Positions 19,632-27,322 of a stretch of 64,000 bases of DNA are shown here, piece after piece. The stretch covers positions 1 through 64,000 of the forward strand of contig JAPDFW010000007.1 of assembly GCA_028826165.1 (NCBI GenBank). The letters run 5' to 3'. The notes beneath the pieces are model-generated. The model was not told the origin of the DNA. It saw only the letters and a list, made by a program, of their open reading frames with translations, and did not search any database. Each line of letters begins with the position of its first letter. Position 1 is the stretch's first letter. A program made the translations under genes and the position numbers. This stretch comes from Anaeramoeba ignava BMAN (taxonomy: Eukaryota; Protista; Anaeramoebae).

Positions 19632-24110
<4,479 letters not shown>

Positions 24111-24141
24111 ATAAAATTCAAAATTTAAAATTATTTTTAAA

Positions 24142-26060
24142 TTATTTATTTAATGATTTGCAATAAACTTCATAATATTTAGAACATTTAGGCCAACAAT
24201 AATTATCAAACTTATTATTTTTATTTTTATTATTATAAAAAAATAAAAGAAAATTAATTAATAAAATAATAAAAAAATTTGATTTTGGAATTTTAAGTTT
24301 ACTTTCACTTCTTTTTCTTCATAATTAATAATTTTTCCTTTTAAATTTTTTGAAGGTGAACCAAAAATAGTTTCTGTTATATCAACTTGATGTAAAATTA
24401 ATCTTTTTTCAAAATTAATGTAAAATCCTTTATAAAATTGGAACTCAACAATATCTCCTTTTTTTGGAGATGGAATATTTAATATTTGATCTAATTTTTG
24501 TTCTAAATTTTTAATTCTTTTTTCATAATCTTCTTTTTCTTCTTTTAATTTTTCAATGTATTTTTCTTTTTCTTCTTCTAATTCAATCAATCTATATTTA
24601 GTATTTGATATGATTTGGTGAATTTCTTTTTGATTTTCAATTTTTAATTGATTAATTCTTTCTTCTAAATTTATCATTTCTTTTTCAATTTCATTTTTAA
24701 TTTTAGTTGATTTTTTTAATTTTGTTGGAATTTCAGTTATAAAAAATCCTTCAAATGTTTGATTTAATAACAATTTAATTGCATTTAAAAATTCAATCAC
24801 AAAATTTTCTGGATTTTTATCACAATATTCTTGAAAGTTTTTTAAATTAATTCCTTCATCTTCTTTTAAATTTAAATATTTAAACAAATTATCAATTTTT
24901 TCATCAATCTCTTTTTTTGGAAATAATTGTTGAATTCCTTTATAAAATTTATCTTTATATTCTTGATTTAAATTTTCTATATAATCATTAATATTTCCAA
25001 CAAATTTTTTGAATTCTAAACAATTAATTAAGAAATATATATCTTGAATAAGTTTATCTAATTGATCTTTATCCAATATTTTGTTTTCATTCCTAAAATT
25101 TGAATTTAAATAAATTAGATTTAATTGAATTTAAATAAATTAGATTTAATTGAATTACAAATTCCAAGAATTAAAAAGAATAGTAATTTGTTGATTTGAA
25201 TCACTTGTTGAAAATTCAAGAATTTCTTTCATAATTTTGATAATATTTAGTGGTTCTTCAGGGTTACTAAAATTAATTATGTATCAAAAAATAACATCAA
25301 TTTCAAGTTGAATTATTTTTAATTAAATTTTTTTTTGATTAATTGATTGAAATTACAGATTAAATATTTGACAAAAAATTGATCCACTTTTTTTTTCAAG
25401 TCCAAATTTGTGTTGAATAAATTCTAAATTTGTTTTTTGTTTTAAATTTCGATTTTCATTTAAATTTCCATTTTCATTTAAATTTCCATTTTCATTTAAA
25501 TTTTCATTTAAATTTTCATTTAAATTTTCATTTTCATTTAAATTTTCATTTTCATTTTCAACTATTTTCGATAAATTATCTAAATATTCTTTTATTTTTT
25601 CATTTCCAAAATGTGGTTTTATTGGAGTTAATGGAATAACTCTCATAGATCCATTTAAAATGGATATTTCAATATTTAAATCTTCAATATAATCATTTAA
25701 TTTAAAATTATATTTTTCAAATTTTTCTTTAATTTTTTTAGAATGAAAAAACTTGGAAATTTTGTGTTTCATTTCAAATTCTTCAATAAGCTTTTGAATT
25801 TGTTGAATTGTTTCAAAAATATTATTTAAAATTGAAAGAGAAATTTTTTTATTATCAAATTTTTTGATTTCTTTTTTTTTTTTAAATTAATTTTTTTGGT
25901 TTTAATTTTTTAATTTTGATTTTTTACTTTTTAAATGTTTTTCAAGTGAATTTATTTTTTGAATTAATTTCTTTGCTTCTTTTTCTGTTTCTTTTAATTC
26001 TTCAAATTTATTTTTTAACCAATTTCCAATTTCAAAAATTTTATCAATAAATTCAACCAT
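24142..26060 (-). CDS. MLKL N-terminal four-helix-bundle-like domain + NCS/calcineurin-B-like EF-hands + coiled coil (5 exons)
   Basis: Exons 26060-25928, 25870-25357, 25266-25159, 25092-~24303 and 24210-24142 join in frame through GT-AG introns. The N-terminus MVEFIDKIFEIGNWLKNKFEELKETEKEAKKLIQKINSLEKHL...IEEFEMKHKISKFFHSKKIKEKFEKYNFKLNDYIEDL follows the MLKL helix pattern. LFNSWNLNENKILDKDQL and LFKYLNLKEDEGINLKNF are EF-hand-like. Confidence 0.75.
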
Positions 26061-26093
26061 TTTTTTTAAAAAATGAAAAATGAAAAATGAAAA

Positions 26094-27322
26094 ATGAAAA
26101 CAAATAATCTTAAATTTTTTGATTCAATTTCAACTTTAAAAGGCTCAGAAGAATTTGAAAAAGAAAATGGATCTTTTATATTTTATGCTCTAAAAAACAA
26201 TTCATCAAATGAAATTATTCAAAAACTTATTGAAAAAGGAACATCCATAAATTGGATTGACTATTATAAAAATGCACCTTTACATATTGCTTTACAAAAT
26301 AAATATTCAAATCAAATTATTGAATTATTAATTTGCAAAGAATCTAATATTAATTCCAAAAATAATAAAAATGAAATACCTTTACATATTGCTTTAAAAA
26401 ATAAATATTCAAATGAAATCAAAATTCTTTTAATGAGAGATTTGAATATTTTTGAATTGGAAAAAAGCCAAATTACTCAAGAAATGATTGATTTATTTCC
26501 AAAAATTTATTCATTTAATGAAGATTTAAACAATTTTTTGAAATCAAATGAATTTACAAATATTGAAATTAAAAGTAATGATGGTGAAATAATCAAATTT
26601 CATAAACAAATTTTATTAATTAGATTTAATAATAATCCAAAAATTTTAACAAAATTTATTAATATTTGCAGAAGAAAACCAAAAGAAATTATTCAATTTG
26701 CATTAAATTTTCTTTATACAGGATTTATTGATTTTGATAAATTTATTGAAAAATTTAATCAAAAATTTATTCAAAAATCACAAATTTATTCAGATTATCA
26801 ATTCTTTTTTCAAATTAAATTGAATTTTGAAGAACAAAAAGAAGAAGAATTAATTTTAAATGAAATTGAAATTGAAAATGAAAAATATGAAAAATATTAA
26901 TTTATGATTTATTTAAAGAAAATGGATTTGATTCTAAATGGATTAAAGAAAAAGAAGGAATAAGAGGAATATTAAAAGATTTTGGAAAATTATATGAACA
27001 AAATGAAACCAAAGATTTTACAATAATTGTTGAAGAAAAAGAAATCAAAGTTCATAAATTAATATTACAAATAAGAAGTGAATTATTCAAAGGAATGTTT
27101 TTATTAAATACATCAGATTCAACTAATCAAGTTCATGATTATTCAGAAAAATCATTTGAAACAATTAATCAATTAATTCATTTTCTTTATAATGATAAAA
27201 TTGATAAAACAAAAATAACCAAAGAAAATATTTCAGAATATATTGATATTTCAGAATATTATCAATTAAATCAAAATTCAATTTTTAATAAATTTTTACT
27301 TAATTTTGTTTTAAAAATTTAA
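26094..27322 (+). CDS. Ankyrin-BTB-BTB copy B with only ~2 ankyrin units, 5'-truncated, frameshifted
   Basis: It has the same N-cap (KTNNLKFFDSI) and BTB region as copies A and C but lacks the first ~13 codons. There is a frameshift at about 26810-26900. Confidence 0.75.

Follow-up and report, generated by a model that had tools for sequence, protein, structure and literature searches.

The region between positions 24142 and 26060 of the window, as we call the whole 64,000-nt stretch of DNA analyzed here (positions 1 to 64,000 of contig JAPDFW010000007.1, assembly GCA_028826165.1), raises the question whether it holds an overlooked gene that joins an MLKL-type helical bundle to EF-hands, and whether such a protein could be gated by Ca2+. 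MLKL-type bundles are death executioners under pseudokinase control in animals and plants, and in fungi and plants, NLRs or amyloid motifs exert this control over related helical bundles. A preliminary description made from the DNA letters had proposed a hidden gene of this kind in a protist, and the host is indeed one, Anaeramoeba ignava BMAN, with an assembly of 42.8 Mb and a G+C content of about 17% in the window. Our analyses used single exons, paralogous proteins from databases, or alignments with the exons as separate rows. They make it highly probable that the gene has the identity and architecture of a fusion between an MLKL_N domain and an EF-hand module. Taken as a whole, the locus is probably best explained as a real, intact and apparently unannotated five-exon gene of A. 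ignava encoding a protein of about 537 amino acids (aa). Ca2+ gating of this particular copy appears unlikely.

Structure of the gene

On the minus strand, from 26060 down to 24142, five open exons and four GT-AG introns give a coding sequence of 1614 nt, corresponding to 537 codons plus a stop codon. In the order of translation, the features are as follows:

25928..26060, minus strand: exon 1, 133 nt, 44 codons plus 1 nt, ATG at 26060; helices 1 and 2 of the MLKL-type bundle
25871..25927, minus strand: intron 1, 57 nt, GTAAAA..AAAAAG, 8.8% GC, two in-frame TAA codons; position also present in the P0001-P0003 models
25357..25870, minus strand: exon 2, 514 nt; bundle helices 3-4, a 16-aa insert, an N/E-rich repeat at the brace and the helix of the first (pseudo) EF-hand (FGLEKKSGSIFCQIFN)
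25441..25560, minus strand: coding tandem repeat (TRF) within exon 2, periods of 6/18/30 nt, encoding NENLNEN...; paralogues have the brace/linker helix there
25267..25356, minus strand: intron 2, 90 nt, GTAATT..TTTTAG, in-frame TGA and TAA; position and phase 2 common to all paralogues examined
25159..25266, minus strand: exon 3, a micro-exon of 108 nt with 35 full codons; degenerate EF2 loop, exiting helix and entering helix of EF3 (..ILFNSWN)
25093..25158, minus strand: intron 3, 66 nt, GTAATT..TTTTAG; contains a tandem duplication
24303..25092, minus strand: exon 4, 790 nt, 263 full codons; EF3 plus EF4 at exon residues ~1-115, then a long helix at ~118-207 and the start of the orphan C-terminal domain
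24211..24302, minus strand: intron 4, 92 nt, GTAAAC..AATAAG, 7.6% GC; the least certain junction
24142..24210, minus strand: exon 5, 69 nt, 22 codons plus stop; Cys-rich tail (FDNYCWPKCSKYYEVYCKSLNK)

The preliminary description had stated that four GT-AG introns join the fragmented open reading frames (ORFs) in one frame, and this was borne out by the frames, the splice sites, the base composition and the intron positions and phases in paralogues. Each of the five exons is open in the phase it needs, and the GC content is 17-23% in the exons and 8-13% in the introns. The ORF list begins at Met 25772; the exon model adds 44 + 1 + 32 = 77 residues upstream of it, which confirmed the earlier remark that the ORF track misses the first ~77 residues. 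In exon 1, the six-frame match to MLKL_N starts at profile position 2, and a profile of the family searched against its own genome matched 25896-26060 with an E-value of 1.7e-13. The own-genome match of exon 2 had an E-value of 7.2e-32, and residues 2-188 of exon 4 matched paralogues within the same genome.

The comparison with paralogues provides strong support for the splicing of introns 1-3. Five paralogue copies, on C35, C143, C36 and C115 (two copies), have these three introns at the same positions and in the same phases, and introns 2 and 3 are shared in this way on contig C102 too. A first exon of 44-45 aa with a conserved pattern and a phase-1 GTAA donor at the same place was found in the same five copies. 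In six paralogues, a micro-exon homologous to exon 3 and ending in ..SWD|L followed by GTAA lies between diverged introns, at precisely the place of exon 3 in the window gene. Moreover, the exon translations tile end to end on the annotated proteins P0001, P0002, P0003 and P0006, with a single column, the split codon, absent at each junction. For intron 4 and exon 5 there is no paralogue to compare; this junction is backed by its composition and by the same junction in the GenBank model P0004, which derives from a near-identical but truncated duplicate on contig C100 (the C100 twin, see below). If intron 4 were retained, the ORF would end at 24258.

Since the frame would continue through intron 1 if its two TAA codons were not stops, a ciliate-type genetic code was also considered. 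It was rejected because intron 2 contains an in-frame TGA, because paralogue ORFs extend up to 766 aa without internal TAA or TAG, and because the convergent neighbours would overlap. Two further observations concern the introns. Intron 3 carries a perfect 25-nt tandem duplication with 2.3 copies (window 25100-25156). In the paralogue at L014:4574-5314 (G000:C139), no stop interrupts the frame where intron 1 would lie, and a K-rich stretch of about 25 aa joins exons 1 and 2 into a 247-aa ORF; GGTAAAA is present there, so the stretch may be coding or may still be spliced.

The MLKL-type bundle, the EF-hand module and the C-terminal part

The N-terminal ~115-160 aa are likely to be homologous to the four-helix bundle and the first brace helix of MLKL, as supported by two kinds of profile search. 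Exon 2 alone matched the Pfam family MLKL_N (PF22215) with 29.2 bits (E 7.2e-7, profile positions 56-109), i.e., above the gathering cut-off of 27 bits. In a six-frame reading across intron 1, the match over exons 1 and 2 reached 33.2 bits and profile positions 2-109, and the same six-frame search gave no match in 14 control genomes. Full-length paralogues scored 50.4, 40.8, 37.4 and 31.6 bits, and MLKL_N was the sole Pfam family above threshold at the N-termini of five family members. The second search was a family-level test, in which the profile A5, built from the N-termini of the family with exons 1 and 2 of the window gene as rows, was run against 177,635 distinct sequences of the PDB. 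Seven MLKL sequences were the sole matches below an E-value of 0.01 (7.9e-10 to 4.6e-8), the next match, a non-MLKL protein, being at 0.012. The best was mouse MLKL (4btf, E 7.9e-10, residues 10-165), with which the profile is collinear over about 155 residues, followed by human MLKL (6ux8, 6d74, 6zle, 6zvo and 2msv, E 3-6e-9) and the MLKL entry 6lk5 (E 4.6e-8).

The preliminary description had aligned the first ~115 aa with MLKL by eye, and the register chosen there is the same as that of the hidden Markov model alignment to human and mouse MLKL. It had also named HeLo-like and RPW8 bundles beside MLKL and suggested a comparison with their profiles. MLKL_N gave a match over the cut-off, whereas the HeLo, HELL, Helo_like_N and RPW8 models of Pfam gave no match to exons 1 and 2 at E-values up to 10, a search in which the HMMER filters may hide very weak matches. 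In the AlphaFold2 model of the paralogue P0002 (residues 1-372), helices at 2-22, 27-49, 58-79 and 83-113 are followed by a fifth long helix at 117-153, with a predicted local distance difference test score (pLDDT) of 56-80 in the bundle. In the window copy, the place of the brace/linker helix is taken by the 16-aa insert and the N/E-rich coding repeat.

For the middle part, the evidence supports an NCS/CBL-like module of four EF-hands, the type already assigned in the preliminary description. The profile A1, composed of exon 4 of the window gene and eight paralogue segments, was searched among 1.84 billion representatives and found 11 proteins only: four of A. ignava (three paralogues and P0004), one of A. 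flamelloides, five standalone EF-hand proteins and P0010. The last of these (365 aa, Q/G/K-rich repeats, profile positions 35-74 only) is taken to be a compositional match. The five standalone proteins (P0005, P0007, P0008, P0009 and P0011; 211-266 aa) matched A1 over about 110 positions with E-values of 1e-11 to 1e-6 and scored 39-68 bits on Pfam EF-hand_1, which identifies them as bona fide EF-hand proteins. Their alignment spans the complete module: it runs from the FGL(D/E) helix in the last part of exon 2 across exon 3 (EF2 and the first part of EF3) and reaches the end of the domain encoded by exon 4. Two fused relatives pass the Pfam thresholds for EF-hands, P0003 with 34.7 bits on EF-hand_6 (cut-off 25) and P0006 with 27.2 bits. 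In a Foldseek search of the PDB and in an Atlas shape search, all top matches were CBL2 (AtCBL2, 1uhn), recoverin, NCS-1, KChIP, CIB, GCAP and the like, with probabilities of 0.9-1.0. When A1 was compared with the PDB sequences, nothing significant was found, KChIP matching at E-values of 1-4 only.

These standalone proteins are the closest standalone relatives of the EF-hand module. A CaaX box is visible at the C-terminus of four of them (CSIF, CSIQ, CRIF and CQMM); as NCS-like sensors, they would carry a prenyl and not a myristoyl group. P0007 belongs to A. ignava, whose transcriptome set contains it as well.

The preliminary description had called the EF loops degenerate and Ca2+ binding therefore uncertain, and the degeneracy was confirmed. 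A canonical loop has 12 residues with oxygen ligands at positions 1, 3 and 5 and Glu or Asp at position 12. The loops of the window gene, in which a split codon, read by hand, gives the L at position 2 of EF2 and EF3, are N-L-N-P-E-E-P-L-N-I-I-K for EF2, N-L-N-E-N-K-I-L-D-K-D-Q for EF3 and N-L-K-E-D-E-G-I-N-L-K-N for EF4; where this EF3 has N-x-N-x-N...Q, paralogues have D-x-D-x-N...E, the loop of P0003 being D-L-D-K-N-G-F-L-D-I-D-E. Position 12 of the three window loops is K, Q and N (alignment A4), so that Glu or Asp is kept in none of them and the canonical pattern is absent. As is established for EF-hands, loops of this kind have no useful affinity for Ca2+. Because the ligands are lost in EF2, EF3 and EF4, the Ca2+-gated effector envisaged in the preliminary description is unlikely for this copy.

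The EF-hand module is followed by a long, coiled-coil-like helix, for which the AlphaFold2 model of the C100 twin showed a pLDDT of 93-98 over 46 residues. The C-terminal ~90 aa are probably an orphan beta-rich domain with a Cys-rich tail. They matched no Pfam family at E-values up to 10 and only the C9 and C100 copies in the own-genome search; in the Atlas feature search the best score was 0.76, with no useful neighbour. Single-sequence AlphaFold2 modelling gave a pLDDT below 50 beyond the helix. In Pfam searches, no kinase or pseudokinase family was found in any exon of the gene at E-values up to 10, in agreement with the proposal that a coiled coil and a small C-terminal domain are present here and a pseudokinase is not.

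Family members, the C100 twin and the surroundings of the gene

The window gene is one divergent member of a family, which the preliminary description had not recognized and which appears, so far, to be confined to Anaeramoeba; it is represented by at least 14 loci in A. ignava and by one or more in A. flamelloides. All A. ignava loci counted have an MLKL_N-like first part, and nearly all of those examined carry the EF-hand module, after which come either U-box and TPR, in some cases with TLDc, or DUF4159-like repeats. One A. ignava paralogue is already labelled "MLKL-like" in GenBank. The identity of the window exons to P0001 is 45% for exon 1, 32% for exon 2, 54% for exon 3 and 35% for exon 4. 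The A. flamelloides protein KAJ3433996.1 (P0006), a "calcium binding protein" in GenBank, matched MLKL_N with 31.6 bits and continues with the EF-hand module (A1, E 4e-9); since it shares the fusion, the fusion predates the split of A. ignava and A. flamelloides. With profile A1, the fused MLKL_N-EF architecture was found only in Anaeramoeba proteins. In the Atlas, it was not seen in any large cluster, and the first 392 aa of P0006, when submitted to a feature search there, retrieved nothing usable.

At G000:C115:347000-371000 (L017, L018; P0003), at least three MLKL_N-EF paralogues alternate with numerous tandem units, each about 230 aa long, that begin with PNVLVVASDDRE... and show a weak match to DUF4159; in P0003, three of these units are joined to the MLKL_N-EF part. 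More divergent MLKL_N-like loci were seen at G000:C63:151582-152114 and G000:C89:193934-216407 (L026-L029). The C89 copies carry an EF3-like exon (..KRDDNEFLDRNEL..), and the C63 copy, which is followed by low-complexity sequence, may be partial.

Of the gene, only a truncated duplicate is on public record. Searches with P0004 (152-485 aa) returned P0004 only and those with exon 2 (94-297 aa) returned nothing; among the unrestricted representatives, P0004 alone stands for the subfamily of the window gene. A search with alignment A2 recovered close relatives of its first row only, missing even the other rows themselves, and says nothing on absence. P0004 (KAJ5070090.1) is a 277-aa model of the copy on contig C100 (G000:C100:139481-141561, L019:2982-5062), which corresponds to window 25398-23336, so that the window gene and its FAM91-C neighbour are both duplicated. 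This twin is truncated at the 5' end and lacks exon 1 and most of exon 2, including the MLKL part. Compared with window 25382-24142 (about 1.2 kb), it shows four differences, one of which is a 1-nt deletion (window-equivalent position 24631) that causes a frameshift in exon 4. In the GenBank model, 60 aa surrounding this deletion are removed as if by splicing.

The gene spacing around the locus is very tight (window 24108-24144 and 26060-26094). The FAM91-C gene on the plus strand converges on the window gene, its stop codon at 24110 lying about 32 bp from the stop codon at 24142, and the ATG of an ankyrin-repeat gene on the plus strand, at 26094, is 33 bp from the ATG at 26060. Directly upstream of the start codon, window 26061-26100 contains a motif of the TTTTCATTTTT type as a 7-nt repeat with 4.6 copies. 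The same type of motif occurs upstream of the starts of five paralogues (L013, L015, L016, L017 and L018) and may be an initiator-like promoter element of A. ignava.

Possible working, alternative readings and comparison with known systems

By analogy with MLKL, the bundle might act as a membrane-binding or membrane-perturbing effector that is kept inactive in cis by the downstream module. An NCS/CBL-type module would grip a target helix in its hydrophobic groove. Where the loops are canonical, as in the paralogues P0003 and P0006, a rise in Ca2+ might open this clamp and free the bundle to oligomerize on membranes. As the window copy has lost the ligands, it would most likely be Ca2+-insensitive, and its release could be set by the coiled coil and the C-terminal domain via oligomerization or a partner. 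Alternatively, it might be a Ca2+-blind modulator that co-assembles with sensitive paralogues. We consider this effector-plus-clamp mechanism tentative, possible but not probable. Ca2+ gating is weakened for the window gene by these data and strengthened as a hypothesis for the family. A still wider and more speculative proposal, to which we give only a small chance, is that Anaeramoebae (Metamonada) possess a kinase-independent, Ca2+-triggered executioner system of the MLKL type with an EF-hand clamp in place of the pseudokinase. Here, Ca2+ influx caused by membrane damage, infection or symbiont misbehaviour would free a pore-forming bundle, the paralogues with tails (U-box/TPR/TLDc, SH3, other) would be effectors of innate immunity or symbiont control, and the window gene would be a co-assembling Ca2+-blind regulator or decoy.

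Several points weigh against reading the locus as an expressed effector gene of this kind. A listing of sequencing runs contained no RNA run for the stretch, hence the junctions and the expression have no read support, and in the length ranges searched no public protein was found for the gene. The fold evidence for the N-terminus comes from the P0002 model, which has moderate confidence. A shape search with this two-domain model, which does not tell MLKL apart from other bundles, retrieved for residues 1-118 generic four-helix bundles (designed bundles, ApoE, CheA P1) with Z-scores of 10-11, and MLKL was not among the top 50 by VIA-align; the case for MLKL thus rests on sequence profiles and not on fold comparison. 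The Pfam EF-hand models gave no match on exons 2-4 of the window gene at E-values up to 10, and the Foldseek E-values of the EF-hand module were 0.05-0.5, none being ≤ 0.001. A low-complexity repeat in the brace region together with dead EF loops throughout could equally mean decay. Finally, membrane disruption by the bundle is suggested by homology only, and autoinhibition and a Ca2+ response of the family proteins are proposed by analogy.

Among the alternatives, the one that survives best assumes a functional protein which is not a death or pore effector. The bundle would then bind lipids or proteins and provide targeting in ubiquitin signalling or membrane trafficking, perhaps at the extensive symbiosome or endomembrane system, and the window gene would be an adaptor version. 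The tails of most paralogues fit such a role, as they consist of U-box, TPR and TLDc and not of death-fold or NLR-type modules, and so does the SH3 domain of P0006; the CaaX boxes of the standalone relatives suggest a lineage of membrane-associated Ca2+ sensors. MLKL itself is reported to have non-lytic endosomal roles (PMC8816944). However, the homology spans the entire executioner bundle and the brace of MLKL, and an expanded family with variable C-termini is typical of defence-type effectors. Moreover, every characterized relative of the bundle, i.e., animal and plant MLKL, can to our knowledge perturb membranes. A non-lytic role is rather unlikely.

According to a second alternative, the locus is a decaying or functionless, unexpressed and recently rearranged MLKL_N-EF copy that has lost the U-box/TPR/TLDc tail, the Ca2+ ligands and the brace. 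The ligands are indeed gone from all three canonical-type loops, a coding microsatellite stands in place of the brace region, and the orphan C-terminal domain occurs only here and in the truncated C100 duplicate. The public sets searched contained no protein or transcript-derived ORF of the gene, no RNA runs are listed, and the region is prone to duplication and decay, as seen from the 5'-truncated and frameshifted twin. On the other hand, five exons have stayed open over 537 codons in an 83% A+T genome, in which stop codons arise easily, and none of the eight splice-site dinucleotides is damaged. The bundle and the EF-hand helices retain their hydrophobic pattern, exon 2 alone exceeds the Pfam threshold of MLKL_N, and in many families EF-hand modules function despite dead loops. 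One example is S100A10, described in the article PMC10604489 as not binding Ca2+. Taken together, decay appears unlikely.

It is very improbable that some K/E-rich helical bundle or coiled coil of a generic kind, encoded in an AT-rich genome, resembles MLKL through chance or composition, because even though the sequence is rich in lysine and glutamate, the shape search retrieved generic bundles and exon 1 alone gave sub-threshold matches to unrelated helical families only, the seven MLKL sequences were the sole PDB matches below the limit and collinear over ~155 residues (E 8e-10 to 5e-8), MLKL_N was the sole family over threshold in five members, and the 14 control genomes stayed without a match.

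Our preferred reading thus remains that of an intact gene for an MLKL_N-EF fusion. Sequence comparison shows the loss of the loop ligands, the homology to MLKL_N and to EF-hands and the gene structure. The data point to an MLKL bundle wired to a Ca2+-sensor module in a metamonad lineage, at no fewer than 14 loci and in two species, which would extend the phylogenetic reach of this bundle, and they flag a gene apparently missing from public protein sets. Copies with canonical and with dead loops stand side by side and form a natural experiment on the gating of the bundle, which makes the Ca2+-gating hypothesis testable.

A literature search found no paper describing an MLKL_N-EF fusion. The closest counterparts are the A. 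ignava paralogues, which share with the window gene the genome, the succession of exon 1, exon 2, micro-exon 3 and exon 4, and the MLKL_N and EF-hand modules. They differ from it in their U-box plus TPR (plus TLDc) or DUF4159-like tails and their near-canonical EF3 loops, where the window gene has a coiled coil, an orphan domain and dead loops. P0006 of A. flamelloides, unlike the window gene, has canonical Ca2+ loops (e.g., DSDGSGGISSEE), followed by SH3 and another C-terminal domain.

Sensors of the NCS, CBL, CIB, KChIP and recoverin type resemble the middle module in fold, and its first EF-hand is non-canonical as in NCS proteins. In contrast to these sensors, the module of the window gene is internal, which makes N-myristoylation impossible, and has lost its Ca2+ ligands, and its closest standalone relatives end in CaaX. 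In plant MLKLs, fungal HeLo/HELL proteins (HET-S, HELLP) and plant RPW8/CC proteins, an N-terminal helical executioner bundle is under the control of a C-terminal module. The window gene differs from all of them by having no pseudokinase, amyloid motif or NLR, and the HeLo, Helo_like_N and RPW8 models remained unmatched, as described above.

With vertebrate MLKL (mouse 4btf, human 2msv/6ux8), the family shares, by sequence homology, the region of the four-helix bundle and the first brace helix, collinear with residues 10-165 at an E-value of about 1e-9, as well as the order of an N-terminal effector bundle followed by a regulatory module. In the Anaeramoeba family, however, a module of four EF-hands stands where MLKL has its pseudokinase, and a phospho-switch of the RIPK3 type is absent. 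The window copy differs further by the insert and the low-complexity repeat in the brace region, the coiled coil and the orphan C-terminal domain. The bundle and the EF-hand module are both of known kinds; what appears to be new is their fusion, with EF-hands in the place of the pseudokinase.

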